From positions 124,001-188,000 of the forward strand of contig DF237064.1 in NCBI GenBank assembly GCA_000708835.1: DNA of 64,000 nucleotides. Direction: 5' to 3'. A program made the position numbers and the translations under genes. The DNA comes from Klebsormidium nitens. Taxonomy: Eukaryota; Plantae; Klebsormidiophyceae. A model generated the notes under the pieces. It ran no database searches, had not been told where the DNA came from, and saw nothing but the letters and a program-made list of their open reading frames with translations. Shown piece by piece: positions 13,839 to 33,389 of the stretch. Numbering within the stretch: position 1 is the first letter of the stretch; each line of letters opens with the position of its first letter.

Positions 13839-14700
13839 TTTGCAGCGACTATGCGCCACCCGCAGATTGGGGCGCTGTGTTGAAGCTGACACCCTTGCCT
13901 CGTGGACTTCAAAGCTGCTCGGAGGCTGCAGCAGAAGCCTAAGGCAACTACGGTACTCTTGTCAATCCGTCCACCCTCACACACTTCGGGCACTGCTGTT
14001 CTGCTCGAGTTCTCAGGTTGTGGGAAAGCTGTGGAACATATGGAGCTCTTCTTGTGAACGTGCAAGACAGACACAGCGAAACGCCTAACCTTTACGTGCG
14101 GTTAGCCTAACCAGCCCGCGCCGCTGGTAACAGAATCCACCCGGAACACTCAACCGGGAAGCTGCCGCAGGACATCTCGAGGTCGGCAAACCCACCAGTG
14201 GCTGCCCTACGTTTCACACGATCGCCGTCGCAACAGAACAGGTTCGAAATGGTCAAGGGAACGAGAGCGACCATGCATCATGCAAGCTAGGGTTGAAAGC
14301 CACGAGAGAATCAGCTCGCAGAGTTGCAGCTGGAGGAGTGGTTGAAACATCGATGGCTGCGCAATGGCGGTGACGCACGTAGCTATTTGGAAGCTCTGCT
14401 AGCGAGCGGCATACATTCTCCTTGAGAACAGTTGATGGCAGGTGGTGGTCAGGGGCAAATCCGAAGGGCGCAGTGTATGACCTGTGAAAGAACGCAAGGT
14501 CCAAAAGCGACCTTATTGACTGCACCTGCAAACCAGCAGAAAATCATCTAGAGCACTTTCCTCGTGCTTTTCCTGATCAGGATTCCCTATCTAAGCAGTC
14601 TGATGCACATCAAAGGGGGGCCTAGCACCTTGCGGTGCATTACCAAAAGTTTCCTTTGTAGCTAGTGAGCTGGCTCCCAGCTGCAAAACCCCTCAGCATA

Positions 14701-17700
14701 ATGCACCTCTCCGCTGTGTCTTGTCTTGGGGTTGGGGCCCTCACATATTCCATCTCCCCAGCATGGCTCCTTTTTGGAGCTCTGTTTGCCACCCTGTGGG
14801 ACCATTTTAGGAGTCCGGCGGCAGGCCAAACCCTACTCACTTTAATCTTCCCCTTTGTTAGCTGGCTATCTTTTCGGCTCAGTCTGATCCTCGCCTTGCT
14901 GGTACACGAATGGGCCCACCTATTGGCGAGACTCCTCCTCCAAAGCAGAAGCTGTCTTCCTGCTGACGTTGGTGAAGCTCCGAAGCGCACAGCTGACGTC
15001 AGAAGCGCCGATTGGCGCGCCAACGTGAACCTCCGGGACTGGTGTCAGTGCTTGCTGCCATGGCGGCCCATGCCGCGAGGCATGACACCACACGTTTGTG
15101 GTCCCAGCTCAACCAGATCAGGGGGTTCTGCTCAAGGGGGCTGGAGGGACGCCTGCGTGCGCGGGTTTGGGTGGCTTGCAAGCGCTGTGTTCTGTGTTGG
15201 AAGCTGGAGCGTGAGAGGGTCGCTGGGGCCAGTGGGCGATTCCTTGCAGGAAGAGCTGTTTCAGGTGGGCTGACGGATTGAATCCAATGTGACATCATGC
15301 CATTGCTACTACTGCCACAGCTGTTCTGGGGTTGTTCTTTCTGGATACATTCAACTGAATTAGCTTGAAAAAGTAAAGACAATGCCAATACCAGCTGAAT
15401 TGGCTCCACAGTGCACCATTTGCTGTAAATATCCTGAGATACTCGGTGTCCATTTGATCCTTGGTGTCTAATGTCCAGGTTTAATGCAATGGCTTCCCCC
15501 ATCTCTGGATTCTTTGGACCCATTTCGTCTTGGCACCGAGGAGAGCCACTCTCATTCATGTCGCTCTCTTTCAGAGATTGCCAGCATCCATACTTGCTGA
15601 AAGACACTCGAGGCCAATCCAGCCAGCATTTATATTTTGCCTGCTTGTGCTGTCCAGGTACCCAACATGTTTGCCCATCAATTGTTTTCACCGCGGGATC
15701 TAGAGTTGTCCTCTCCCTTGTCCCCTGTCTTCTTGCCAGGCACATTCGCTTAAGCTTTCGAGAACGAGCACATCAAGCATTTGCTCCGTGATAAGTATGC
15801 CCGTGACAAGAGGAGTGCTGAACCGACAGTGAGGTACTCAGTAAAGGTCGACCACTCCTTGCCAGGCCTGTTCCATTGTCCTGCTCTGCTCCACCCTAAC
15901 GGACCTGTGCGAGATGCTGGGGCTGGCGCCGTCAAAGGCGGGCGTCTACCGCTGCGGCAACTTTGGGCTGCTTGTGGCAGGCGCAGTGGAGGGTGCCCGC
16001 TCCCGGGGGCTTGACTGCCTCCGCGTGTTGCAAGATATGGCTGCTATTTCCACGCAGGTGCGTGACAACCCTCTGGACGCGATCCCATCGACAGAATTTG
16101 TTTTAGATGACTTTAATTGCCCGAGATACTGCCAATCAATTGTTCATTTATCTTATCTCGCGAGCTCTGTCCGGCGCAGCCGACGAGCTTCTATTCGAAG
16201 ATCAGGGCACTCAGTTGATCTTAGGTATTCGGAGTCTCCTTGGTATGGGTCAAGCTCCATGAAGATCAGCCGAGGTTTGTTGGCTGCAGCAGCTGTATGT
16301 GGAAGATGAGCTAGGTTTGTTTCTGGCTTGCGCTGGGCATAACAAGTAATGCGGTCTAATTCAACTCCGAAATCGCAGGTCCTTGCTTCTGCCTCTCGCG
16401 TACAGATTTGCCTGAACTACCCTGCGAACGCTATCTTGTTCGTGCCCTTCACTTTAATCCAGGGTGCGCGACTCTGATGTTTGAAATAGCCACGTACTTC
16501 CGAATTGCCTGTTAATGCTGCTTGTGCAAATGATTGGTCCACAGGCAGAGACCTGTTTCCATCGCTTCCCACTCTCGACAATGAACTTAAATTCAGGGAA
16601 GCTCGATTCTAACAGCCATTTTACAAGTAGGACTCCTGAACAGGAGGATAAGCTGGTCAAAAGAAACAAGACGCAAGAACAATCAAGGTGTCCAGCATCC
16701 CTAGTCAGTCAAACTGCAAACCATTGTGTGGGTTGATCGCATGGGTTGACGTTGGCCGCCCTTTTCATGATCCAGCGTGGCGGCCAGTCTGGGGGACTGG
16801 TGACGTTGATCCAGTCGGAGGGGGGCCAAGTAAAGGGGCTGCGCGAGCGGGTGTGCCCAACCAAGCGCCAACACCTGGCCGTGCTGGTGAGACGCCAAGT
16901 CGATGCCCACGTCGACATTCCACGTTCTGAAAATTTGAACGTTTTCAATTTCAGGTTTCGGCGTTGCAAGTGCAGAATAGGTCGCAGCTGCCAAAAGGCT
17001 GCTACTCCATATGCAACGTTCCCTACTACGCTGTAATTTAGCTTCATGTGATGACGGCCTTTGGACTTCAGGGCTTCGAAGTTGAGTTGTGGAAGATCGG
17101 ATCCGGGGACTACGTCCTATAGATTCTCCTCTCATTTGATTACCCGCAAATATTTCAGACGAATTACCAAACGAAGACGCAAGTCGGTTTCTCATGGATC
17201 AAACCGCAAAATTAGCAGCTGAATAGAGACCGTCAGGTCATTAGTTATTGACACGCGACTTCGGCTGCGTGTTGGATTCTGAGATTGTCCGAAAAGAAGG
17301 AAGCTCAAAGCTCTCGGAGCTTTGGCTAGGTCACAATTCTGATTCATGAGCAATTTTAGGGATGCTAAACCAATTAGAAAAAGAAGCAGAAGAAGAAGAC
17401 TACGAGATTGAAGAGCTAGAGGACGACCCTCCAGAGTGCTCCACCCTGAGCAGACTACTTGTGTGCTGTCTTGTTTCGCATGTTCTATCTTCTGAGCGCT
17501 TTTTGTCCTCCTCAGCTGGCGGCACGTTTCCGGCGGAAGCTGGGCTGGGCCAGCCTGTGGCAGTGGCTGCGCCGTCTGCTGCTCTGGTGGCGACCGACCG
17601 GGAAGAGCGCCCCGGGCGCTGGCCCCAGTGTGCGCCTCTTCCTGGGCCACACCCGGTTCGCCACGTCGAGCATCCCTAGCGTGCGCGAGAGCCACCCCCA

Positions 17701-20700
17701 CCAGGTAAGCCGGTGAAGGACTTGCAAGAAGGCCGTGCAGTCCCCCCAGGCGTTGAATGATTCCTTAAAAATGCTGATAATCAGGTCTTGCGTTGAGGAC
17801 CAGGAGTTTGCTTTGTTTGTCCCTTCTACATGACACGTTGTTGTCAAGAAAAGGCTTCGTCTTTTCTGCAAGCCACTCTTGAGACCGTCCACAGCAATCA
17901 GCCGGGCTCTTAACACAGAGTACGGCCTGTCGGACTCAACCTAGTAAGTACTGGTGCTGATTCGACCCACCGGTAGGCTCGACCCTCCGCTGCATCCCCC
18001 ATCCCTCGATGCTAGACTAATGCTGTAAGCATCTTTCTCTTTCCGAAGCAACGCGCTATTTTCAGAAGCGTTCCATCTTATACACTCCTTTGTTTTGACC
18101 TGCAGTGGACCCCCACTTTCCGTTGCAACATGTGGCGCCAGGGCCGGGGCATGCAGGCGGAGCAAGTCGGCATTTACATCACGCACAACGGAGACTTTGA
18201 GTTCTGGTCGCTCTTCGGACGTGACCGGACGCACACGGAGATGGGTTTCTGGCTGCAGGTAGGTCCAGCTTAATGCAAAATGTTATACGTGGCGGCTGTT
18301 GCAATGTGAAGGAGGGGAAAGAGTCCGAAAATCATGCAAGCGCCTCGCTGATTCCGGAGGGAAAGTTTTCGCGTGCACTGAGACTCCGAAAGTGCCAGTG
18401 CGATGTCACTGCTTGCACGTGACGCAAATTCTGAAGCAAACGAGTCGAGTGCTATGCCGTCGTATCCGACTACGATGTGTCTACTTCGACACTGATACAG
18501 ACTTCCTTGAAGCCTGAAGTTGTAAGATCTTCGTGCCGGGAAAACAATAGCCAACGAAGGAGTATTTACTGGCATTTACAACCTTCTCTCCGACTGCAGC
18601 GCGTCCTGGACTGCCCCCAGTCGGCGCACTGCGACAGCGTCATGATCGGGGGCCTCGTGGAGCTGCTGCGCACACAGGGCCTCTGGATGCACTCACTGCG
18701 CCTCGCCTACCACCAGGTAAACAGGGCCTCCACAAGCTGTTTTTAAATGACCTTGCACAGTGTCTACATTCCCTACGCTTTTGGAAACATCGCTCTGCGT
18801 TTGCACAGTCCGTGACGCATCTTTTCGACATGCTTTTGGACTCCCGTTTCGGCTCGGGGATTGCCTAGTAAGGCGAGGATCGCAAGCGATCGACCGTGGT
18901 CCTTCCATATTGCCCCGCATTCGCTTTTTACGGCGAAATACCGTCTTTGAGGAAGTCTCCTCCAAAATAATGTGCGAACTCACCGACAATCAATATTGGA
19001 GGGGTATTTGAAAGGAGGTCAGACAACACATGGTCAACACACTCTGGTAACTGGACTTCAACGGGACAGTAACTGGGCCAATTTGGGTTCTTCATTGACA
19101 GAGTATCTACTCATGTTCGTCTTGCGTGTATGCAGACGGTGACGCACTCCTTCGAAGAGGTGTTCGATTACGGCCTGCCGAGCGACCCCGCGACCGCCAA
19201 CGCGGCGCCCACGCGCGCCACGCTGGACGTGCTCGCGCGCATCGCGGAGGCCGCCTTCCTGCGCTTCCTCGACCAAGCATCTCCAGGACCAGAGGTGCGC
19301 TTGGCCATCTCTTATTTTCTTAGAATGTTCTGGTTTTGTAGGGGATCGTGCCCTTTTCCGGCAGGTACCGCCAGACAGAGGCCATCCGAGCTTTGTGTTT
19401 AGCAGGTTCAAAGTTTGGAGCACGTTTCTGCGCTTCCTCGGCAAAACGAGCGGACCCCGGTATGCCACACGAGAACCTGAACCAAGTATTGGTACACAAA
19501 CTAAACTTCTGTTGGTTTTCTGCTGGATGTTTGAAGCAAGGGGTTCCCCACTTTCAATTACGCCTCATCCTCACTCTCGCCTGTTCGGAATCACGAGAAA
19601 TTACCAACTTGAGTTTGCTGAGTGTTGAAACGTCGAAAAGGATCGCAACAATGTCAGGAGGCATGCGCGGGCGCAAGTAGATTTCCATTGGTCCAAAAGA
19701 GGTCCACTTTCCCCTGCGGTTCGTTTGATGAACCGGGTTCCAGGCACATGTAGGCAAAGCGCAGGGTTCGTTTCCTCTCTCCTCGCTCGTGGGCGGTTTC
19801 TCAAAACTACACCCGCTGTTACATTGACGCACCGACTGTATTGGAGACGGGTGGTTTGCTCACCGAGTGTTATTTGCAAAAGCGTGCTGACGTCACTTTG
19901 TGTGTGGGCTGTATGCGCAGAGTCACCAGAGCGGACGTGTGCACGGGGAACAGGAGAGACGCGCCGGCGCCGGTCCGCACAGCATTGAGTGGACCGAAGA
20001 AAGCATGGAGAACTTATCCCAGGTATGCCAGCGCGAAGTCTGCCGTCCACATGGAGCAGTTTCAGGATATCGACTCAACTCTAGATTGAGAGCTCCATCC
20101 AAGTGCTGAGAGGAGCGGGGCTAGACAAAGCGTCTGGATCGCACGGTTGTTGAGCGATTCGCGAGGTTTGTTATGGGTTTGCTTAGCGGGGCGGCCCCGT
20201 TGCTGGAACGTACTTACAACCGACGCTTAAGAACCCCGCCCAAAGTACAGATCTATGAAATACGGGAGGAACACTGTCACGTTTCCGGTGCAGGCACTCA
20301 AGGCGGCAGTGCTGAGCGACGCCTCACTGCGGCTTGAGTCTTAACCAAGCTCAACTAATCAACAGAACGTACAAAGTCCACAGACTGACGACTAAACCAA
20401 GCATACAGAAAAGTTAAGAACGATAAGGAAGCCTTGCCATGTGTCTGGTGCAGGCCCTGAAGGCGGCGCTGTTGAGCGAGGCGCCGGCGCTGCTGCAGAA
20501 GAACGCCCCCGAAGGGTTCCGCACCCTGATCGAGGACCTGCAGGTCGGGCGTGGGGAGGCGTTCTTGGAGCTGCTTGCGCGGCAGGCCGTTGTCAACTTC
20601 CTGCACAACGACCTGCACTGGGCCGTCAAGAAGTTCCTCGCCAATGCAAAAGTGAGCGACTTAGCTTGGTCGCCGACGAGAAAATATGAAGTTTCTGGCG

Positions 20701-23700
20701 GAGTCTCGGCAGTGGACCTTCGTCAAGTCCTTCGGAACAACCTGCATTGGCCTGTCAAGAAGTTTTCTCACCAACGCTGAAGTGAGCTATGTCAGGTCGT
20801 GTCCAAAGCGATTACTTAGAACTCTGAAATGCCGATACCTACTAAGACCCGGCACTCGTTTGCAAGAGGCCGTCGTCAACTTCCACATAAGGATCTGCCG
20901 TGAAAATTTTCTCTGCAAGCCAAGGCGGGCTTGTCCTCCTCTTCCTTCCTAGAGTCTTTCATTTATAGAAGCAACCCCCGTTGGACTTCAACTCGTCGTC
21001 CTTGCTGCGCTGAAGCAGCCATTTTTTTTGAGCTGAAGCTATTGTGACGTCACTTTCGTGGGCTGAGCGGAAGGTACCTTCCTGCGCAGGGCTCGTTCGG
21101 ACTGGCGGTGTGCTGCACGCTGGACCCCAACCGCATCGTCCTGGCTCCGTTGGATCTACCGCTGTCCGTGGGCTGACGCTAAGCTGCACGTCATTTGCCC
21201 TAAGCTGCCGCTAAATCTGACGTCACCATTCTTGCGCAGGGCTCGTTCGGGCTAGCTGTGTGCTGCACCCTGGACCCCGACCGTGTCGTCTTGGCTGCCC
21301 TGAACCAGCCGCTGTCCGTGGGGCTGGCACCCGAGCAGCGCGCGGTGCTCTACTCATCAGAGGCGCAGTCTCTCAAGGTCAGAAATTTTGTGGTCAGAAG
21401 CGATCTTCGGGTTTCACGAGCAGAGCTCGGCTCTAGAGTCAGGGGTTTTATCGTCAAAGCTATCAGACTTGACAACACTTCCCTTCTTGCCGCTTCAAGG
21501 CCTTGTCTTTGATTGCCTTTGGCGGGCAAGGTGCCCGCGCCAAGCCGTGGTCTCCTTGCCGGAAGCGTCGACTGCGAACGTTCACACAGTTTCTAAGGAT
21601 CAAGTTGCTACTTTGGTTGAGAGGATAAGAGAGTTGACTTGCTTTTTGGAGGCATTGTGCGCGTGGGCTTGGAGGCAGCTTCAGAGGACCTTTAAGAACC
21701 CGCTAGTAACTCAGAGGATCTTTAAACAAATACTATAACTAACGACTTCAGAGATGAGCTTGTATGTCACGCCCATCTTTTGTCGCCAGGGGCAAACAGA
21801 CGTTGGAGGTTGTCGACCCAATCAGCCGTTCTTCCGTAGCCTTCTGAAGCGTCGTCGTTTCTTGTCATCGAGCATTTGGCCTTCTGAAGCGTTGTCGGTC
21901 CGTCTCCAAACAGACGTCCCTCTCGAAGCCGGGCGCGAATGGACCAGTGGAAACAGTGGCGTGGCGCGTAGATCTGAACGAGGCAGACGGCGAGGTTCTG
22001 GAGATCAGGCTGACGTCAGGGGGCGGAACGCCGGGTCAGCCACCGAGCCAGTAAGTAAACCAGAAGATCAGCACTATCTTGCTTTGCGACGGCAGAGTGG
22101 TGCATGCGTCATGAATTTGAGCTTTACGCACCCCCCGAAGGAGCACCTCCCCTTGGCGTAATTTAATGGCTTCTTCGGCGTTCGCAAGTCGAGGGGAAGA
22201 GCCTGGTTGTGCCAGGGCTCCACTTCCTATCTTTTTGAACGGGGGCGGAAATTGGACCTCAACCCTACTTTCTCCGCTCCTAACCTCCGATGTTTTCTAA
22301 CGACAAAAACTGGGTTTACTTTTCCTCGTCTGCAGACACTCCACAGACGGGGAAGCTCGCAATGGAAACCCAACGAGCGGGAGTCAGAAGGGACTGGTGG
22401 CCGATCTGGAGGCCGGGAACGGGGGCGACCCGCTGATCCAGCCGCTTCCGGATGCCGATTTTCTGACGCTGCGGCTCTACAGCCGGAGGCAGGACAAAGC
22501 GATTTCTCAGGTGCGGGTCGTGCCTCACTATCTTCGCTGATGGCTCAGATAACGTCTGCGCCTTAACCGCTCGTTGCTGGTTAGAAATTGCTTGGCATAG
22601 TCTCGACACAATTATCCAGCTTGAATGCAAGCGATTCTAGGTCAGACTTTGAAGTCCTGACCATGATCTCGGCAAACGCTGGAGATTCAGTTGAGGGCGC
22701 GGGGTTGCGGACGTCGCTCTTGGCCGCGCGTATCTCATGCTCCCTCGCTGCCTCCTTGCATCCAAGAATCATCGGGAACTATTTCTGTCTCTCCTTCAAC
22801 CACGCCCTATTCATCAACAGAACCGCTGGGAGTTTCCTAAGCAGCAGGCAGGATCTTGCTTTCTTGAGAACACCTTACAAGCCGTAACGCCTCCGACCTT
22901 GGTGAACAACCCGCGGCAGTCCACTTTTTGCATCGTTCTAGTTCTGTTTTCACTATGCGTTTGCCTGTAACAACGCGCCGGATACCCATTCTTTTTGCAG
23001 TCCGAGTTCGAGGCCTCTCAGCGACTCGTACAAATGGCAGGCAACCCGTACATTACGTTCGACGACCCTGTGATAGAGCATGACCTGGTTGGAAACGACA
23101 TCCAGGTACGTCTTTGTGAGCGAAAGGAACTTCGGTGTTCATCTATCTTATTCTTCTTTGTCAAAAGATCCTACAAAAAATTCCTAAGAGATCCTAAAAT
23201 TTCCAAGGATGGTAATCCTTTCGAGGCAGTATACAGGGGGTATTGTCAAGGATCTTGTCGCCACGTTACTCTAATCTCAATGCCCCAGATCGTGCAAATA
23301 GCTCACGGGAAGAGAACTATCGCTGACTGGGGAGTTTTCGATCGGAGCTGGAAGCTTTGAAGTCCTGATCGAGCAGGGTGGCTGACTTCCCTCCTATTTT
23401 CCAGGACATCCCTCGTGTTCTGGCGACCATCCGCCGCGAGTGGACCACTGTGGGCAGTCTGAATCAGCAGACAGCGGGCGCCCTCTTGGCGCTTCTCCAA
23501 GAAAAAGCGGCCATGATTGGGGACGCGCCAGGGGATGGGAGCACGCGCAAGGAGATCGACGTGTTGGTTACAGGCGTGGAGAGCAGCCTTTGGGTCGGGG
23601 AGCAGTTTGCGGCGGACCTGCAAAACTGTGAGGCCGCATTGAGCTTATTTTCTTTGATCAATAGGTGCATCCTCCACACTCACGAAGAAGAGTCTGCTTT

Positions 23701-26700
23701 TGCGAGCCACGCTGCTTCTGCGGAAGGTTGCCATTTGCGCATTGCCGAGCGACAAATTGTCTGCGGCTGGCTTTGCATGCAGTCTTGTTTCTCAAAACCA
23801 ATCCCCCGAAGACTCCTGCAACAATTGCACGAAATGCAAATTAAGCGGCAACCAAGTTGGCGTGCTCGATACAACCTGTGACTGGGTATCATCTCTAAGT
23901 AGCTTTTCCGTTAGTATAAACCGTGCTGAAGCTTGATAAACAGTCACCCCTCGTCAAACAGCGCTCGGGCCAGTTAGGATGCTGCTGACCTCCTACTTCG
24001 ACGGAAATTTTGCAGAAAGCCGCTGTTGACTGCACCTTGTGTTGGGACCCTAAAAGTCGCTTCTAGACCTAGTCAAGCCTCTGACCATAAGCCATGTCTC
24101 TGCAGTCCTGCCCCAGTTGCGCGTCGTGCCCATCTCGAGCAACAAGGTGATCGGCGTACTGGGCAACGCCCGGGGCAAGATTTCGACGGCCGGCTTTTCC
24201 TTCTGCCGCCTCACGAGCAGCCTGCGCAGCACCATTGTGATCGCCATCAGCCAGTCGGGGCAGACGTTCCCGACCCTGCACGCCACGCGCATTCTGCAGA
24301 GGGAGTGCCCGGGGTGAGCGGCCGGGGGAAGGGTCCAGTGCATTTTGAGTGTCGGCTTGCAAAAGCCGGGAAGTCCTCAGAACTCGACCTTAGCCGAGCA
24401 ACACTGCAATGTATTCCCATGAAACGGAAAGTTGTTGCTGGAGTACGCTTGCAAAGAGGTACTATATCCTCGCAGATTTAGAAGCAATTTTCTGGGGTGC
24501 TAAGGTTGGCAGTTTTTGATTCGATTCCTCTCCTGGGTCGGCCTCAACTTGCGACAAATTTGCGGCAGATTTGAACCACTTTGCGCTTCACAACTTGGTC
24601 CAGGGCCAGAGCCCAGTTTTCAATTCTTCAAGTCAACAGTACATGATTCCTCACGGTTGCGCCTTCACCGGCCTGCCTTCGAGAGTCTGCCTGCAACGGG
24701 TCTTTGACGACTTGTCTGAACGGGTCTTTGACGACAACTGAGCACGCCACGTGTCGTGTTGTAGGCGCGTGTTCGTGGTGAGCGGTCTGCTGGACGGCAA
24801 AATGTCGCAGGCGGTGGGTCAGCGACTGGAAGCCGGTGCGGCATTCTGCCAGCGCGTGTTCTGGACCGGGGCCGGCTGGCGCGCCGCGGAACCTGCAAGG
24901 TGAGGGCGGGGTATTTTGACTAGGTTCATAAAATCAAACTTGTGCCTAAGGAGTTATAGTGGTTGAGGTTGTCACGTGTCGTCGTCGATGGATTGCCAGC
25001 GCGTGGTCTGGACCAGGGCCGGCTGGCGCACTGCGCGGAACCCGCAAGGTAAGGGGAGGCGGATTAATCAGGTTTGGATAACCAAACTTGTGGCTAGTCA
25101 TTTGTCACAGTGGATGGATCATCACGGCTTTGTTTTGACTGTTTGCCACGCGGTGTCTCTACGAGAGCTGGATGTCGCGATGCAGATCGAGCTTGCGAGG
25201 TAATGGGATGCGATTTAGCGAGTTTGAGGAGCTAGATGTTTGGGAAACCGCTTATCAAAGAAGTTTTGGAATGTCGTCGCGTGGTTTTCAAAGACGGAGC
25301 TGGCTGGCGCGCTGCCGAAGCTGCAAAGTACGGGGCGGTTCTATTGAGTGCACCGTGACATGCTGAGTAAATGGGGCTTGGCTCGAGTCCAGAAAAGGTT
25401 TTGATTAGGCTGCAGTCTGACGTAGCTGTCAACAAACCGCCTCTTTTGAAGCGCATTGGGCTTCTCGGTGTTTGCAAGCCCGCAAAGCCTGCGTTTTCTT
25501 CTGATTATGATTTTGCTTGTTTGCAGTGTGTCCTGTGTTGCCGCCCACGGTTAATACTCTGACGGAGCTGCTGCTTTGTTTCGGACGTCCAGCTGAGGGC
25601 TGCCGCCAAGCAGAACCGGGACTTTTTTATTAAGTAAACGACGACCTTTATACCCTTCAAGACTTGCCTTTTGTCTCTTAAACTGTCCATAAGATTGACA
25701 CTGGAATCGCTCTTTTGCAGTGTATCCTCTGTCGCCGCCCACGCTACTCTGACGGAGCTTCTGCTCTTCTTGGGCGACCAATTGAGGGCTACCGCCAAGC
25801 AGCACCGGGGTCCCGGGCCTCTTGGCCTCCGCCTCACGCGCAATGACATCAGTGAGCGCCGCTTCTTGTTTTGGCTTTAGCAAATCTTGTGGTGGTCAGT
25901 GAGATCAGAAGAAGTGGTCGGGCGGTCAGAAAAGATGGTCATCGCGTGTCAGGGGTTCTTGTGTTAGCAATTCATGGTGTCAGGCTTTCTCCAAACAGAT
26001 TTATCCTTCTGGATCTTCAATTCATCATCCAGAAAGGGGATGCACTTTTCCTGAATGCTGGTCACGCTTGAAAAGAGCAAATGGTGCCCCCTGTTCGGCG
26101 AGCAACACCTTCCCTCTTTTTGTTTCAATTGTTGACTGTTTCTTCACATTGTCCCCCCAGTTCTCGTAATTGCACTCAGTATCTGACTCATGAGGATTCT
26201 CCTTTCGCTGACGGCAGAATGGGCAGAAAGACTTTTCTGACAGCAATAATTGCTGCTTGCAGAGGACATGGGCCGGGTGCGAGACGCCTTGGTTGACAGC
26301 ACAGCCGGAACGTAAGTCCACTTTATCTCAGACAAACTCCAACTTAGGTAATCAGACAGTTGATCGAAGCTTTTGCCCTGCCATACGACTTCGCCAGATA
26401 AGCTATCGCGCGTGCTTCAAAAGACAAGGAAGAACAGGGTCCATTTTCTGATAGGACGCGCCAGAACTTCTGTTTGGAAGCATGCCGCAGGCGTTTCGAC
26501 CTAGAGCAGAAAGACACATGATCAATGCGAGCTTCAAGCCCTCGTCTGCCCGAAGAGCTGTAGACCTTCTGTACGAGCTGGGAGTTCTGAATATCATCGG
26601 CCGACACAAGAAAAAGCAGTCTCTTGCGTTGCTTACAGAAACGTTGGAAGTCCTCTTGAAGAAGTATCTCCCCCTTACATGTCTCCATTTCTCCTCCAGG

Positions 26701-29700
26701 CTGACTGGATCAACCGCAAAGGGCGACCACATCCCCTCTGCGCTGCACTCTGCGCTGGTCGCCCAAGGCCGCTGCTGGGGGCACCATATCATAGAGACCC
26801 CCGTCGCATGGATGCTGTCATCCATCTACATCTTCGCAACCGTCATCTCGGGGTGGCCGCTCTTTACTGCAATACGGCGCGGGATCGGTGCAGGTGGGTG
26901 TTTTCTTGACGCCAGCTTCAGAGTGTTGCTGTGCTGACGTCAGATTCAGGGGTTACCACTGTTTGGGCGACAATGTGTGGTCTAGGGCGGGGTTATCGCG
27001 CACTGGATCGGTGGAAAGAAAGATTGTATGGATATCAACTCACTGGCGAGGGGGCCTGCCAACAAATGCTTCTCATTAAGTGTGGAAGCGCAAGTGAAGA
27101 GGCGGGTGACCAGAGGCACAGAAAAGACGATGAGAGGGAGATAAAGTAGGCGAAGAAGGAAAAGGGACCAAATGCTGGCCTGCGACTTCGCCCCTTTCCA
27201 CGTTGATTTTACCTGCCCCATCTTTCTCTATCTTCCGTCTGCCTCCTTTATCCAAGCCGTACCCTTTTACATTTGTTCATTGTCCTCTTGATTCTCCTGA
27301 TTTGCAAGGCACATCATTCTCAGCGCCTATCCTGACGTCACTCTCCCTTTACAGGCGGGCCCGGCGGCGAGTTCCTGGTGTACTTTGCGCACGCCCTGGA
27401 CGCGCTTTCTTACTGCTTCCTGCCTCTCGTGTTTTCGTACCTCCTCCGTGTGATCCAAGGACGACAACTCTTGGCCCGCCTCGGGAAGAGGTGAGCTCTT
27501 TTTTCCCCACTTTGATTTGGGCCCCAACCGCTAGTCTAGGCTTGCTGACGTTTTGATAGGTAGCGTCGATTCGGATGCTTCACGGCGCCGTTTTTTGACG
27601 CACGGGTTCTTGATCGCGGAGCAGGATTTTCTTCTTCACGTTTCCTCCCTAGAATATGCGCCATTCACGTTCCTTCTGTAGTATAAGCGCCATTCAGGTT
27701 CCTTCTGTAGAATAAGCGCCAGCGAAGGAGACCTCTCATAGCATATATCACCGTTGAAGGTAGCTGAATCTGCGGACAGCACATGCAAATCCTTTCTTCA
27801 ACTGTTCTATGGCGGTCGTGCTTGCTTTAGCTGCTATAACCCTGTGGCACTGTTGTTGCAGGACGCTGGTGATCGGAGACGTTCCTTACGTGCACCAGCT
27901 GCTGGAGGTGTATGTCTCCAAGCTGGTGAGTGAAGCGGAACGCGTTCGTGAGATTAAATCATTTTTCGGGGGACATTGTACAAATAATTCAGAAGCTTTC
28001 AAGATACAAGGGAGAAAGACCACAACAAAATCATTACGATGAGGAAGGAAATAAAAAGAAGAAACACGCACAGCTAAGACGGAGAAGGCAGCTTGAACAA
28101 GGATCAGTCCAAGATCTAAAAGAAATCTATCGAGCAGCTAGCATTTGACATAAACAGAACTCGCGATTTTTCAGAATCTACAGTAGAAGATTCGGGAGTA
28201 ACGACGCTGGTGCTCTTCGGCTGACGTGACATCCGTTCTCCGCAGTTCGCCCTGAGCTACAGCATCGCCAGTATTGACGTACACGGCAGCAACCCACTGG
28301 ACCACCTCGTACACAGGTCAGCGAGCCTTTCCGAATAGCTGAGACATGCGAGGTTTTGGAACCATTTGTCAAGGTTTGTCAAGCTTAGATCGACCTGCAA
28401 GCACTGGCCGGCCTTTGTCCGTGCAGCAACCCTGCCAAACAAGGCTCCTCAGGCCTGCGAAGTCTTGAAGGAACTAATCGTTTCTGACTAAGGCAGTCTG
28501 TTTTCTTGTTGTACGATATAGAAAGAAAGACACTGGGACTTGACCAAAGCCTGCCCTAATCTGATCGTACCACCTGAAAACGATGCGTAGCAAGAAGAAG
28601 CTGCCCCCCCCCTAACGTGTCGGTCCTCGAACGCCTCGGTTGACCAAGTCCGGGCTGAACTTTCGACATTTCCTTGTTGATGTCTCTCAATCTTCGTCAA
28701 GCAACTTCCTGATTCTGCAATGCTTCATTCGTTTGCAGGTTTACCCACCGCATTCCTTGTTGATGTCTGTCGATCTTCGTCAAGCAACATCCTCACCCCA
28801 TATTAACCTTGTCTGTTTGCAGGTTCACCCATCGCGTGGTGCGCGGCGTGTTGCTCGCCATCGGGCGGCCGGACGGGCGGCTGTGCACGCAGACCAAGAG
28901 CGAGTCGTGGGTGCTCATGGCGCTGCTGCAGTGCAAGTCCATCATCAACGGCGGGTGAGCCGCCACGTGTCACGTTGCGTCAGTCTGTGACGCGCCTCTG
29001 CAGATGCTGTCCTAGTTGCGCTTTCGGTGCCAGGCGTTACACGTTGCGTGACGATAATCCGTGACCCTGGTCAGTTTAGGCAAATATGTATGCCGTCACG
29101 TTCTGCAAACGCCACGGGTGTGGCCGGCGCCCTCCTAAGGAACTGAAAGAACTTTTGACACCACACTTAAAATAGGTGACTGAGCGCTGTCGCCGAAGTC
29201 AGCAGCTGGTGTCAATGTGTAGGAGGAGTGTAGGCACGTATCTTGGGCGATTGGCGCTCGTTCGTAGGCCTGGCTCCTTCCATATTGGCTACTTGTAGAA
29301 GAATCCAAGCACGACCGTTCGAGAAGACAGTTGGACGAACATAGCCTCCTCTTAATCGTAGTGCTGCCGCAGAAACGTTCAAAGCGGCCAGAATGCAAAC
29401 CTCAAAGCTTCAATCCCGAGCAAGCGTCCACAAGTCCATTCGATCTTAAGACCCTACAGCTTCAGAAACCCACATATCTTTGGATCCGTGCGTTCCTCCT
29501 TGCAGTGCCGATGCTGAAACTGATACCGTGGGCCACAACCAGATGGTCCTGGTTTCCCTGACTCAATTTCTCGAGAAACCGCCCAAAGATTCTGCAATCT
29601 CAAGACCCTAAAACCTTCCAATGACGCATCTAGACTTTGGCATTCCTCTTTGCAGCGCCGGCGCAGAGACTTTCACGGTCGGCCATAACCCATACCGCAA

Positions 29701-32700
29701 CCCCATGGTCATGGACGCCTCCGTAATCCTTCCGAGCAAGCGCCCCCAGTTCCTGTGCGAGAAGATGATCGGCGTGGATGCTCACGAGCCGCTCGCGCGG
29801 CTGGCCAGCATGGGCCACGTGGTTCGCGGGGAGGGCGCACACGAAGCCGGGTCCAAGTTCCACGACCTGGACGGGCGCACTGTCGGGGAGCATCTGATGC
29901 AGGAGGGATCAGTGCAGCGCGCCCGTCGGCTTACGGTGAGGAAACCTGGTCACTTTTTGATTCAGAGTTTGGGGTGTAAACGAGTCAAGGTGGTTTTTGG
30001 TGGGCTCATGGGTCACGTGGTCCGCGGGGAGGGCGCACACGAGGCGGGGCCAAATTCCACGATTTACACGGGCAGACCGTTGGGGAGCATCATTTGATGC
30101 AGGAGGGATCGGTACAGCGTGCGCGTCGGCTCACAGTAAGTGCTGAGGGCCATCTTTGGTAGCTCCAAAGTTCTGGCGATTTGGACTTGTAAGTAAGCGT
30201 GCGCGCGCGGCGACTCACAGTGATCCAGTTCTGTGCTTTGACGTTTCAATAGTACGAGTTTGCGAGACTTTCCGCTCGCGGGGAGGGCGCACGAGGCGGA
30301 ATTAAAATCCCCATGATTTGGACTGGCGCGCCGTTGGCAAGCATATGATGCAAGAGGGGTCGTTGGCTCACGGTATGTGTCGTGTTGCCAACAGTTTCTC
30401 TCGTTTCACGTTGTGATGTAGAGTTCCAAAGTGTTTGGCTCGCCAAGACGGTTGACGTTGACTTTCAAAAACACGCGAGATGCCTGCTCCGAGTCCCATG
30501 ATCTGACTGGGCGCAATTTCGATGCGCGGCTGCTGAATGGAAAGTGCGGCGCGCGGAAGTGTGAAGCCTCGGAGCAACCGCCTTTACCCGTTGCGGGCGA
30601 GATTTTCGGACATACGTTCTCGTGTCCAGTACAACGAGCGGCAACTCTTCAAAGCCGTTCCTGTTGCAAGTTGTTCACGAGATCAACACGGTCATTCTGT
30701 CGCCATCAAACTTCTGACTATATTTGGGAGATGGTACGTGATTTTGAGAATACAATTATGGAACCCAAGTCATCTGAAACGACTCTGAGAGTGTACATGT
30801 GCCGTCGCTGTGTGAGCCAGCTGTCGAAGTTCAAGTCAGCGACCCGGGGGCGTGACCAGGTTGTTTTTGCTGATAGGGCGGTCACATATGAATATTTTCG
30901 GGGTGCACCGTCCCTCAAGGACCGAAATTTCGTCCCTCGGGGACCGAAAACCGGTGATTTCGTCCCCCAGAATTTCAACTCGATATTCTGGGGGACGGTA
31001 CGCCCCTCACGGACGCCGGTAAAAATACTTATGGAGGGTTGGCGGTCACTACTCGGACAGTCTGGCTCGCCGTATAATCCGGGAAGCTTCAGATTTTCGC
31101 GCGATGTGTCCCTGAGGGAAATATGACCAAAGCAGATTCTCAGGGAGCAGACGCTCCCTCAGGGAACACTCCCCACTTCCCCAAGAACTCATATGTGACC
31201 CCCCTATGAGATGGTATTCAAGACTGAGATGGTATTCAAGACTGCCGTAACGAGCGTGTTTGTTTCCAGTTACGCTGACCATCTCTATCTCGCTTTTGCC
31301 TGCCAGCTGTCTATGCTCGCGCACGGTTCTCACCAGATCGACTCGGTGGAAGCGGGCGACCCGGGGAACCGCGAGCAGATCCTGTCCGCGATGGAACTAG
31401 ACGTGCGGCGATTGTTGGACAGCCAGTCGCCTATGGAAGAATTCACCGAGAACCGCTTCCTCTCCCTCGAGCGCTACATCGCATTCCTGGTGAGTAAATA
31501 GATTGTTGTTCGAATCTGCTTTGATACTGCTCCACTTGCTTTTCGGTTCACGACTCACGAGGTTTGGACGTACCCACAGTCGATGCTGCTGACATTCCCC
31601 CGAGAAATTCGTTTGGAGTCGTAACCACGACTCCTGAGACCACGACCAAGCCGCGGATTCGGATCTGCTTACCTTCATTATACAGGTACTTGCCTTTTTT
31701 GCACCCTTTCTTATCCTTCAGGGCGACTTTTATCCATTCCCCGCCCCCAGAAGCTGAAATACGAAACTTTACAAGCGTTGGATACATTGCCGTACACCCC
31801 CGACCTTTCGAACTACCTACATCTCTCAGGTGACGTTTCACGCGATGGCGCGCACCGTGGCCTCCCTGTGGTCCCTCCGCTTGACGTGTTCCGGGTGCCC
31901 TCGTTGTATCTCTTAACCATGTGATATTTACCATCTGACACGCAATTCACCTCTAGACCTTAAGAACAAGGGACTGTTTCACTCCCCAGGTAGCCTTCCA
32001 CGCAATGGCGCGAACCGTGCTTCCCTGTGACCTCTCCGCTTCGACCTGTCCCGAATGCCCTTGTAGTCTTCCTTGTGCGTCCTGAAATAAAGCTTGAATG
32101 GATCTCTCTCTCCCTCAAACTGCGCCCATCATACCCGACTCTAACAAACACCCTGTTCTCAGTAGCAGTAAGCATCGAACTTGTTTCTTTTCCTAGGTGA
32201 CCTTCCACGCGATGGCGCGAACCGTGGCCTCCCTGTGGCCCCTCCGCTTCGACGTGTCCCGCAGCCAGAGCTGCCTTCGCATCGCCACGACCGCCGCGCC
32301 GGTTTCCGCCGCCGATCTGGAGCGCGAGTGGCTCGAGAGCGCAACGGACCCGGACGAGGGCACCATCCACGTGCGCACGTTGCGCAGGCGGCCCAGGTCA
32401 GTCATCCCTCGAGCGTATGCATTCCTTTGGTCACTAAATCAGTTATGAGGAAGAAGCAACAGGCCCATGTTCGACTGCGTGTGTATACTCCAACCAACCT
32501 CGGCAGACTATACTGGGACGTACCCCTGAGATGGTTGAAGAAGATTGGTCAAGCCAAGGCCGCCACTTTCGGATTCGCACCGCCTAAAAGGCACTTTTTG
32601 TGGGAGTAGAAAGCCGGCTCCTTCCTCCCTTCTCTTTGTTGATGTCCCTTGTCCTACGTATTGTCTTCTACCTTGTCATCTCTTCCTCGTGCAGCACTGA

Positions 32701-33389
32701 CGTCCACGTGTCCCCTGTGCAGCTTTTCGGGTGCCGACCAATACCCGGACCGCCACACGATGCCCTCGGTCCGGGGAGCCGCCCCGCTCTTCGCTTCCGT
32801 CCTTTCCGGCTTCCGCCGCTCCCCTTCCGCCTCCAAGTCCCCGCTCCTCGAGGGCGGATCCCAACGCGGGTCCTCCCAGCGCAAAACCAGCTTCGACCTC
32901 AAGGATTTGTCTGCACGGGGGGGGAAGCACGCGGGCGCGGTTCTACCCCCCCTCCACATTCAAGATGTCTCCGTTAAGGGGGGCACGGCCCGGCTGAACG
33001 TTAGCCCCGGAAGTTCGTTGAGGGGGGGCATGTTGGGGTTACCGAGCCCGGCGGTACACGCAGGGGGATCCCTCCGGGGGGGGAACGCAGTTGCGGGGCT
33101 GGCCCTCTGGCAGGGGGGGTCCCGGAGGGGAAGCACCGGGGGCCTGAGTGTGTTGGACGTGTTGCGAGAAGGGGCCTCGGAAACGGCCCTCGGAAAGGAG
33201 GAGCGGAGCCCGAGAAGCGACCGGGATAAGGAGTTGGCGGGAGCGGAGGGGCAGAGGGTGAGAAACGGACGAAGCGACGCGTTGCGTGCCAATTATGAAG
33301 ACGGGGGTGCGACGAGTGACGACGCGCGCGATGATGGGGAGAGGGGGCCCGGACGGAGACGGAAGGGCAAGCCCGTGTTGGATTCTTGA
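14701..33389 (+). CDS. Large membrane-anchored GlmS-like protein (N-terminal TM/HExxH segment, class II glutamine amidotransferase domain, SIS domain, TM hairpin, second SIS-like region, disordered tail), 27 exons, ~1660 aa
   Basis: Exons 14701-15264, 15866-16057, 16776-16886, 17516-17704, 18106-18258, 18600-18716, 19136-19294, 19921-20022, 20454-20651, 21240-21377, 21914-22050, 22336-22510, 23001-23105, 23405-23627, 24106-24313, 24765-24899, 25721-25851, 26263-26311, 26700-26893, 27355-27490, 27862-27925, 28246-28316, 28823-28954, 29656-29935, 31337-31489, 32197-32396, 32723-33389. All are GT-AG and in phase, totalling 4983 nt. Motifs: CGNFG, RGGQSGG, GHTRFAT..HPH, ITHNGDF, DS, GSFG, SSE (GATase_2) and AISQSGQT (SIS). 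The start codon is the least certain part. Confidence 0.85.
20287..21177 (+). repeat. Cluster of exon echoes around exons 20454-20651 and 21240-21377
   Basis: An acceptor copy at 20287-20333 (ggtgcag|gcactcaaggcggcagtgctgagcga), a donor copy at 20695-20787 (...cctgcattggcctgtcaagaagttttctcaccaacgctgaa|gtgagc) and an acceptor copy at 21078-21177 (cctgcgcag|ggctcgttcggactggcggtgtgctgcacgctggacccc). Confidence 0.88.
24993..25620 (+). repeat. Exon echoes flanking exons 24765-24899 and 25721-25851
   Basis: A donor copy at 24993-25056 (tgccagcgcgtggtctggaccagggccggctggcgc...cgcaag|gtaagg), a weaker copy near 25295-25335, and an acceptor copy at 25515-25620 (ttgcag|tgtgtcctgtgttgccgcccac...actctgacggagctgctgc). 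Confidence 0.85.
27650..27722. repeat. 29-bp tandem repeat, about 2.5 copies, intronic
   Basis: tagaatatgcgccattcacgttccttctg / tagtataagcgccattcaggttccttctg / tagaataagcgcca. Confidence 0.8.
28665..28840 (+). repeat. ~83-bp intronic duplication carrying a copy of the acceptor of exon 28823
   Basis: cattccttgttgatgtct(c/g)tc(a/g)atcttcgtcaagcaac occurs twice. The copy gtttgcag|gtttacccaccgc matches the real gtttgcag|gttcacccatcgc. Confidence 0.8.
30005..30380 (+). repeat. Two or more degenerate copies of the 3' half and donor of exon 29656-29935
   Basis: cgcggggagggcgcac...catgat/cacga...gcat..gatgca..gaggg..tcg..gctcac(a/g)|gt repeats at 30005-30140 and 30275-30378. Confidence 0.9.
30874..31206. 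mobile_element. Non-autonomous DNA transposon (MITE), 333 bp, in an intron of the GlmS-like gene
   Basis: 18-bp TIRs TAGGGCGGTCACATATGA (30874-30891) and TCATATGTGACCCCCCTA (31189-31206), with 1 mismatch. Both ends are flanked by TGA; an alternative reading is a TA TSD with TIRs starting GGG. There is an internal perfect 13-bp hairpin at 30961-30997 and no transposase. Confidence 0.8.
31207..31242. repeat. Perfect 18-bp direct tandem duplication abutting the MITE right end
   Basis: tgagatggtattcaagac x2. Confidence 0.9.
31822..32055 (+). repeat. Two copies of the acceptor and 5' part of exon 32197-32396
   Basis: ctctcag|gtgacgtttcacgcgatggcgcgcaccgtggcctccctgtgg (31831) and ccccag|gtagccttccacgcaatggcgcgaaccgtg (31990) match the real tcctag|gtgaccttccacgcgatggcgcgaaccgtggcctccctgtgg. 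Confidence 0.9.

Follow-up and report, generated by a model that had tools for sequence, protein, structure and literature searches.

How is an enzyme of the free-N-terminal-cysteine type activated when a folded membrane domain stands exactly in front of that cysteine? The question is raised by a gene of the alga Klebsormidium nitens that we followed in a window of 64,000 nucleotides (contig DF237064.1, positions 124,001 to 188,000; coordinates below count from the first letter of the window), a eukaryotic stretch of about 52% G+C, rich in introns. The gene encodes a protein in which a membrane head is followed by a class II glutaminase domain, a double-SIS domain with a hairpin between its halves, and a conserved C-terminal tail motif. 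We find this architecture to be common to cyanobacteria, some other bacteria and many algal lineages. From sequence comparisons and structure models we propose that the protein may be a membrane-embedded GlmS-superfamily enzyme that is made as a precursor, processed at Cys218, and amidates a ketose phosphate, a reading to which we give an even chance.

Between 14.7 and 33.4 kb the + strand carries short open stretches with very high third-position G+C, and these bear, at the expected places and in one reading direction, all the motifs of the original prediction, which was made from the sequence alone. Our gene model was obtained by dynamic programming over GT-AG exons and then corrected by RNA contigs and homologues. 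Its coding sequence lies on the + strand at 14701-33389, from the ATG at 14701, which has an in-frame stop upstream at 14659-14661, to the stop codon at 33387-33389. All introns are GT-AG, there is no internal stop, and the 27 exons encode 1670 amino acids (aa), in agreement with the 27 exons, about 1660 aa and identical ends of the original prediction. RNA contigs of 4.4-5.1 kb from four studies, matched on 14500-20499, contain eight GT..AG joints that are exactly the junctions of exons 1-9. They fix exon 1 (from the unspliced 5' untranslated region to 15264), exons 2-8 and the acceptor of exon 9, and one of them extends through 3064 nucleotides (nt) more of exon sequence past 20019, a length sufficient for the last exon. 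In the same RNA runs the 31-mer share over 18000-24400 is 0.21-0.25, consistent with the exon content of the model. RNA junction support covers exons 1-9; exons 9-27 are placed by third-position G+C, canonical splice sites, the open frame and colinearity with homologues, which match the window exons in order from 14.8 to 32.3 kb (tblastn). A K. nitens paralogue, P0057 (1418 aa), lies on another contig (129,929 bp), is more compact, and is annotated 'putative type II Glutamine amidotransferase'. The model aligns to it in a single segment (aa 67-1382, 43% identity), which also spans exons without support from other homologues.

Could two or more neighbouring genes have been read as one? The RNA junctions stop at exon 9, and some introns carry decoy copies of exon ends, as such an artefact would allow. 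But the contigs join exons 1-9 and then run on through 3 kb of exon sequence, the bacterial homologues are single open reading frames (ORFs) in the same order, and the alignment to P0057 is one high-scoring segment. The artefact is hardly credible and is largely refuted. The gene is transcribed and spliced, one gene giving one transcript, and the division into separate transcripts against which the original prediction had warned did not turn up in these data.

The window protein belongs to a family. An 83-aa exon (23378-23626) used as query retrieved 133 cluster representatives at E <= 0.001, the long ones colinear with the window, and judged by these alignments the match is far beyond chance. 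Green algal members come from Closterium, Volvox, Chlamydomonas incerta, Chlorella and Pycnococcus; others from the cryptophyte Guillardia, the haptophytes Prymnesium and Chrysochromulina, the dinoflagellate Symbiodinium, the diatom Pseudo-nitzschia, the brown alga Ectocarpus and the glaucophyte Cyanophora. The family was not seen among the named land-plant sequences retrieved here. Metagenome members with long single ORFs adjoin eukaryotic genes (ubiquitin C-terminal hydrolase, prefoldin). Scanning one genome for each prokaryotic species with a profile built on the C-terminal half gave 43 loci: 37 are cyanobacterial, in genera including Leptolyngbya, Nodosilinea, Phormidesmis, Chamaesiphon, Microcoleus, Cyanobium and Synechococcus, and the remainder are in Omnitrophota, Elusimicrobia and Verrucomicrobia bins. 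In almost all loci one ORF of about 1200-1320 aa matches both the N-half (positions ~8-633) and the C-half profile, with E 1e-136 to 1e-195; the non-cyanobacterial bins have mostly longer ORFs, up to about 2900 aa. A language-model search likewise ranked two cyanobacterial clusters named 'hypothetical protein' (1234 and 1262 aa) as the closest, with true GlmS clusters behind. These ORFs are the uncharacterised cyanobacterial family of about 1200 aa that the original prediction had pointed to, and they show that bacterial homologues share the architecture. Nor is this an already characterised eukaryotic family: named members are annotated as hypothetical or 'Glutamine amidotransferase type-2 domain-containing', and our literature search found no paper on the family.

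Several members depart from the usual form. Giant bacterial and metagenome forms of 2300-2900 aa occur (L004, L034, L035, L041; P0012, P0035, P0040, P0043, P0071, P0084, P0117), with about 700-1240 additional residues at the N-terminus. Pfam, run on extensions of about 600-1240 aa in the giant bacterial forms, gave no match. In two cyanobacteria the gene is broken over several frames, by either pseudogene formation or sequencing error: L012 (Nodosilinea sp. LVE1205-7, 3875-7533) and L036 (Microcystis elabens FACHB-917, 4881-7755).

What kind of protein is this? Library searches gave few direct answers. On full-length members (five homologues, P0057 and three cyanobacterial members) Pfam returned no family, including the GATase, SIS and Peptidase_M50 entries that the original prediction had named for checking. 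On single exons Pfam gave nothing useful (0.14 for SIS, otherwise chance matches), and single-sequence searches of PDB gave no match. The glmS models of NCBIfam (TIGR01135, NF001484) hit P0057 and two cyanobacterial members in short but colinear stretches that fall within the glutaminase part as well as the SIS part; another cyanobacterial member, the third one examined, was not hit. One might take the protein for the ordinary GFAT/GlmS of the hexosamine pathway with additions, given the identical two-domain fold order and phosphate loop. However, the glmS models, whose cut-offs stand at 381-418 bits, give it 17-25 bits. It shares 10-24% identity with GlmS, matches neither GATase nor SIS in Pfam, carries another tail motif, and belongs to a separate family that has a second K. 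nitens member, the paralogue P0057. We regard this explanation as very unlikely; by these scores the family is not a GlmS orthologue.

Structure models were predicted for P0057 (family alignments A1 and A2), with mean predicted local distance difference test (pLDDT) scores of 81.6 and 85.4. Compared with VIA-align, the glutaminase fold matches GFAT1 at Z 26.1 and E. coli GlmS at Z 25.8 (root-mean-square deviation, rmsd, 2.2 over 224 residues, 24% identity), with rmsd of 2.2-2.7 over the GlmS/GFAT structures. Foldseek on the N-terminal half puts GFAT/GlmS on top and PurF next, with EgtC, AsnB and GltS after; as structural matches PurF has Z 22.9 and GltS Z 16.7. In 52 diverse members the Cys, R-G-x-Q-x-x-G, H-x-R-x-x-T, the His of HPH, H-N-G-D and D-S are invariant, as is Cys-Gly-Asn-x-Gly in the family. 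The class II amidotransferase domain claimed in the original prediction is borne out by its motifs and by this match at the level of the fold (Z 26).

The family Cys superposes on chain residue 1 (Cys1) of solved GlmS/GFAT. In the window protein it is Cys218, an internal residue, and in most members it lies 100-300 residues from the N-terminus. The motifs and the modelled fold together show a class II N-terminal nucleophile (Ntn) glutaminase domain with Cys218 as its predicted internal nucleophile. In the P0057 model the five residues directly before the Cys are disordered, with pLDDT <50. There are also headless members, namely the cyanobacterial ORFs L010, L013 and L028 and five metagenome proteins, which start Met-Cys-Gly-Asn-Phe-Gly, and a start of this type is classical for Ntn amidotransferases. 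Because these members begin with Met-Cys, which is the best evidence we have, we envision that the Cys functions as N-terminal nucleophile and that the head is removed where it is present. The head and glutaminase domain are encoded by the following exons.

14290-14700 (start approximate), + strand: 5' untranslated portion of exon 1; RNA contigs reach back at least 210 nt before 14500 and are unspliced as far as 15264.
14701-15264, + strand: exon 1, coding, aa 1-188; membrane module with HEWAH (14905-14919) and VRGFGWLAS (15157-15183); RNA joint 15264/15866; HExxH and R..GW..S family-conserved.
15866-16057, + strand: exon 2, aa 189-252; final helix of the membrane module, Asp201 (LTDL, 15896-15907) and Cys218 in RCGNFG (15950-15967); RNA joints.
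16776-16886, + strand: exon 3; RGGQSGG (16776-16796), the GlmS Arg26 region; RNA joints; R, G, Q and G invariant.
17516-17704, + strand: exon 4; GHTRFATSS (17645-17671) and SHPHQ (17690-17704); RNA joints; H, R, T and H invariant; hhalign to E. coli GlmS 1-90.
18106-18258, + strand: exon 5; THNGDFEFW (18181-18207), the oxyanion Asn-Gly; RNA joints; H-N-G-D invariant.
18600-18716, + strand: exon 6; CDSVM, equivalent of GlmS Asp123; RNA joints; D-S invariant.
19136-19294, + strand: exon 7; helical insert within the glutaminase domain; RNA joints; aligned to P0057.
19921-20022, + strand: exon 8; variable insert; RNA joints.
20454-20651, + strand: exon 9; helical insert with conserved NDL..AVKKFL; acceptor by RNA, donor GTGAGC, tblastn.
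21240-21377, + strand: exon 10; GSFGLAV...QPLSVG...YSSEAQ, last glutaminase strands; 63 homologues match; contiguous with exon 9 in P0004 and P0057.

The C-terminal half has a double-SIS fold. The P0057 model matches GlmS/GFAT isomerase domains at Z 27-29 (333/343 residues, rmsd 2.6), and the SIS domain with SQSGQT and second SIS region of the original prediction are both contained in it. The phosphate loop S-x-S-G-x-T, together with several Arg, His and Asp residues of the second SIS half, is invariant or nearly so in 60 members, and the Ser of E.SLW is conserved in the family. ISQSGQT aligns to LSQSGET of GlmS, the loop region corresponding to GlmS 337-367 (hhalign, NCBIfam). A sequence search of PDB with the C-half profile brought up no SIS protein, only a chance beta-lactamase. 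The SIS halves are separated by an insert of helices, two of which are hydrophobic (aa 1064-1084 and 1100-1124); these are the hydrophobic pair predicted earlier for the exons at 26700 and 27355. The terminal IATTAAPVS, also predicted, lies within the tail motif RSQS.LR(I/V)ATTA(A/S)P(V/I)S, which is conserved from bacteria to algae. The exons of this half are as follows.

21914-22050, + strand: exon 11; linker region; ab initio, colinear with P0057, partial tblastn.
22336-22510, + strand: exon 12; variable linker; ab initio, colinear with P0057.
23001-23105, + strand: exon 13; linker ahead of SIS; ab initio, P0013 tblastn, P0057 alignment.
23405-23627, + strand: exon 14; start of SIS subdomain 1 (VLVTGVESSLWVGEQF); alternative acceptor 23377; donor GTGAG; the family was retrieved with this exon.
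24106-24313, + strand: exon 15; SIS subdomain 1, phosphate loop ISQSGQTFPTL (24246-24278); split codon in frame with exon 14; hhalign and NCBIfam on GlmS 337-367.
24765-24899, + strand: exon 16; end of SIS subdomain 1, GAGWRAAEP; 38 homologues match; junction AG|T gives the Ser of the homologues.
25721-25851, + strand: exon 17; helix VSSVAAHATLTELLLFL; more than 30 homologues match; frame open only with this donor or 25809.
26263-26311, + strand: exon 18, 49 nt, KDMGRVRDALVDSTAG; ab initio; fits the D-L-E-R-M-R-D-A-V stretch of homologues.
26700-26893, + strand: exon 19; first hydrophobic helix of the hairpin (26803-26865); 62 homologues match; hydropathy.
27355-27490, + strand: exon 20; second hydrophobic helix of the hairpin (27372-27446); homologues, hydropathy.
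27862-27925, + strand: exon 21; start of SIS subdomain 2 (TLVIGDVPYVHQLLEVYVSKL); 75-83% identity to homologues.
28246-28316, + strand: exon 22; FALSYSIASIDVHGSNPLDHLVHR, with family-invariant D, H and H; homologues.
28823-28954, + strand: exon 23; FTHRVVRGVLLAIGRPDGR...; homologues.
29656-29935, + strand: exon 24; end of SIS subdomain 2 and a variable segment; tblastn, P0057.
31307-31489, + strand: exon 25; long C-terminal helix (ENRFLSLERYIAFL); tblastn, P0057, tail conservation.
32197-32396, + strand: exon 26; conserved tail motif RSQSCLRIATTAAPVSAADL (32260-32319), kept from bacteria to algae; 42 homologues match.
32723-33389, + strand: exon 27; species-specific low-complexity tail of about 220 aa and stop; open frame of high third-position G+C to 33387-33389, with no homologue support in the homologue comparisons.

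Other double-SIS enzymes are nearly as close to the model: glucosamine-6-phosphate deaminases, AgaS and FrlB, at Z 22-27. This matters because the Cys might never be unmasked, leaving a silent glutaminase and a double-SIS domain that works alone as an isomerase, deaminase or deglycase, like NagB-II, AgaS or FrlB. The similar structural scores fit such a view, as does the distance of the Cys from the N-terminus in most members. Yet the entire glutaminase catalytic set has stayed invariant over distant lineages, and members that start with Met-Cys use the Cys as their N-terminal residue. We consider a glutaminase silent in this way quite improbable.

What, then, is the head? The original prediction had noted an N-terminal hydrophobic module, and the module proves to be a membrane module with HExxH. 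In most members HExxH lies 100-150 residues ahead of the Cys and is followed by R..GW..S and S/T-D-L in two more hydrophobic helices; in the window protein HEWAH is at aa 69-73, and Asp201 belongs to a membrane helix further along the chain. A comparison of 35 sequences, taken from eukaryotes, cyanobacteria and other bacteria, shows the two His, one Gly and the Asp without variation; eukaryotic, Omnitrophota and Verrucomicrobia members also have the Glu of HExxH. The best PDB hits of the family profile are two RseP entries with HExxH aligned (E 0.28 and 0.56), and hhalign to E. coli RseP finds the same register, weakly (E 0.004 but probability 8.5%). For residues 54-230 the best structural matches among membrane proteins are four site-2 proteases (VIA-align Z 8.0, 7.2, 6.6 and 6.1). 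The invariant Asp of the head, a putative equivalent of the third ligand of M50, lies in S/T-D-L, against LDG in M50. Because the Z values are under the level advised for helical bundles, we call the head site-2-protease-like, and weakly so, with a putative His-His-Asp site, and do not claim it as a proven M50 member.

Such a head could be the business end of the protein. If the protein were a regulated intramembrane protease, the head would be its output and the GlmS-like body a sensor of glutamine and sugar phosphate, that is, of carbon/nitrogen status. Known site-2 proteases are regulated by PDZ or CBS domains, a parallel to this arrangement. HExxH and Asp do lie in membrane helices, site-2 proteases are the best structural matches, and two further observations go the same way. 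First, in 9 of the 37 cyanobacterial loci (L009, L010, L012-L015, L017, L020, L031) the gene is directly downstream, on the same strand, of two signalling genes: one codes for a fusion of a response regulator with a ParA/MinD-type ATPase, the other for a protein that combines three receiver domains with HisKA and PAS. Second, some members of the red-plastid group, stramenopiles among them (P0093, P0178, P0188 and P0192, from Pseudo-nitzschia and metagenomes), have calcium-binding EF-hand domains, according to a precomputed Pfam column. Against this, none of the sampled cyanobacterial members has the catalytic Glu, in several members the head is absent altogether, and the catalytic residues of the glutaminase are invariant in all members. 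Because the glutaminase set is kept where the Glu and even the head are lost, the conserved core appears to be the enzyme and not the protease, and we judge the sensor-protease improbable.

The other cyanobacterial loci have no common neighbour, save a lineage-specific trio in four Nodosilinea-type loci, and the analysis of all 37 found no metabolic partner. Gene context in cyanobacteria thus hints at regulation, not chemistry. The link to cell wall, plastid peptidoglycan or glycoconjugates suggested in the original prediction found no evidence, the conserved cyanobacterial neighbours being two-component signalling genes.

Where did the algal genes come from? Trees were computed from members aligned to two family profiles (930-949 columns), the careful tree under LG+C20+F+G4. 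All 17 eukaryote-type rows form one clade (100/100), as do the 13 cyanobacteria (100/99). Cyanobacteria group with giant metagenome proteins (95/91), Omnitrophota plus the Elusimicrobia bin stand apart (85/73), and the eukaryote clade attaches between these two sets. Within eukaryotes the window gene groups with Closterium, and P0057 is sister to both (95/92). A clade exclusive to eukaryotes and cyanobacteria is rejected by the approximately unbiased (AU) test (p 5.6e-07), a test that is harsh on an endosymbiotic hypothesis because the giant metagenome proteins adjoin the cyanobacteria. Were the tree rooted among Omnitrophota, cyanobacteria and the giant proteins together would form the sister group of eukaryotes, which would be compatible with an old endosymbiotic origin; such an origin is possible because the family occurs in a glaucophyte, in green algae and in red-plastid lineages. 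Of the bacterial, cyanobacterial-type ancestry proposed in the original prediction, the bacterial link is shown and stands. A specifically cyanobacterial donor is not supported by the tree, in which eukaryotes lie neither within nor beside the sampled cyanobacteria.

How might the membrane-embedded amidotransferase operate? We propose that the bond between Arg217 and Cys218 would be cut, giving Cys218 a free alpha-amino group. Two routes are conceivable: Ntn self-cleavage, or an attack of the neighbouring HExxH module on the chain it belongs to. Once unmasked, the glutaminase would split glutamine, and the ammonia released would be transferred to a ketose phosphate bound at the SIS domain by its SQSGQT loop, giving an amino-sugar phosphate at the membrane, and the internal hairpin would hold the catalytic body on the membrane once the head had been cut off. 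The bolder version, in which the head cuts its own chain a few residues past its last membrane helix, creates the N-terminal Cys and so switches the amidotransferase on, is a doubtful proposal that we nevertheless find worth stating. If it were true, it would be a not yet described mode of Ntn enzyme activation, and would tie intramembrane proteolysis to algal nitrogen and amino-sugar metabolism.

Several points weigh against the proposed enzyme and its processing. All sampled cyanobacterial members (loci L006-L046) have HGxGH, with Glu replaced by Gly and the two His and the Asp kept, so that cleavage by the head is not the general mechanism; if the head does cut elsewhere, cyanobacteria would have reverted to ordinary self-cleavage. 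The Z values of 6.1-8.0 to site-2 proteases fall short of about 13, the value recommended with the tool for helical bundles. The structural evidence comes from models of P0057, not of the window protein, and the failure of Pfam to place full-length members and the low glmS scores given above count here too. Glu488, His504 and Lys603 of the GlmS isomerase have no placed equivalents in the family protein: the profile comparison spans 31 columns only, a hand alignment sets Glu488 on Ala, and RIATTAAPVS has no Lys. (The GlmS sequences gathered for profile-profile alignment were all at least 89% identical to E. coli GlmS and gave no usable profile.) Finally, the hairpin helices are moderately hydrophobic (1.5, Kyte-Doolittle) and might be buried instead of membrane-spanning.

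A side feature of the gene deserves mention. Four of its introns carry degenerate tandem copies, 69-90% identical to the adjoining exon end with its splice site, which could act as decoy or alternative splice sites.

21079-21172, + strand: copy of acceptor and exon start of exon 10, 83% identical to the acceptor and first 80 nt (repeat family D1); left out of the model, no such duplication in homologues; the decoy at 21090-21167 is 78 nt and frame-neutral.
31808-31882 and 31975-32019: copies of acceptor and exon start of exon 26.
24994-25035 and 25295-25347: copies of exon end and donor of exon 16.
30007-30054 and 30091-30140: copies of exon end and donor of exon 24.

Short tandem repeats also occur in the introns, at 27635-27721 (29 nt x 3) and 31207-31244 (18 nt x 2.1). 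During modelling, the ab initio exon 1 was wrong and was corrected by RNA and homologues, the exon 5 acceptor 18142 was replaced by 18106 on the RNA joints, and a 32-nt pseudo-exon at 25017-25048 was removed on RNA and homologue evidence. A model in which homology was over-rewarded drew parts of introns into exons and was rejected.

The family is large and ancient, is retained in many lineages, and has neither a Pfam entry nor a curated name. If it does make an aminated phosphosugar at the membrane, this would be a new branch of nitrogen and sugar metabolism common to oxygenic phototrophs. How does it compare with known systems? Like GlmS/GFAT, the window protein places a class II Ntn glutaminase ahead of a double-SIS domain, with matching glutaminase residues (Cys1, Arg26 region, HTR.AT, HPH, Asn-Gly, Asp123) and S-Q-S-G-x-T loop. 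GlmS/GFAT, however, are soluble proteins of 600-700 aa with the Cys right after the initiator Met, whereas here a membrane module of about 217 aa precedes it, a helical insert of about 160 aa interrupts the glutaminase, a hydrophobic hairpin parts the SIS halves, and RIATTAAPVS replaces the Lys603 tail; Glu488 is apparently not kept, and scores fall far below the cut-offs. NagB-II, AgaS and FrlB/FraB match the fold of the C-terminal half equally well (Z 22-27) but have no glutaminase domain or membrane segments. The head resembles site-2 proteases of the M50 family (RseP, SpoIVFB, MjS2P) in that one membrane helix carries HExxH and a later one an Asp, and in the way its helices are arranged (Z 6-8), but it is much smaller (about 4 helices), has no PDZ or CBS domain, carries S/T-D-L instead of LDG, and has lost the Glu in cyanobacteria. 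A parallel to the internal Cys is offered by Ntn amidotransferases with a propeptide. In B. subtilis PurF and glutamate synthase the precursor Cys is likewise internal and needs cleavage for its exposure; there the propeptide is a short soluble segment of 11 to a few tens of residues, whereas the pro-region here is a folded membrane domain with its own metal-site motif. The family is assembled from known folds, and the unusual point is the head set before the Ntn nucleophile.

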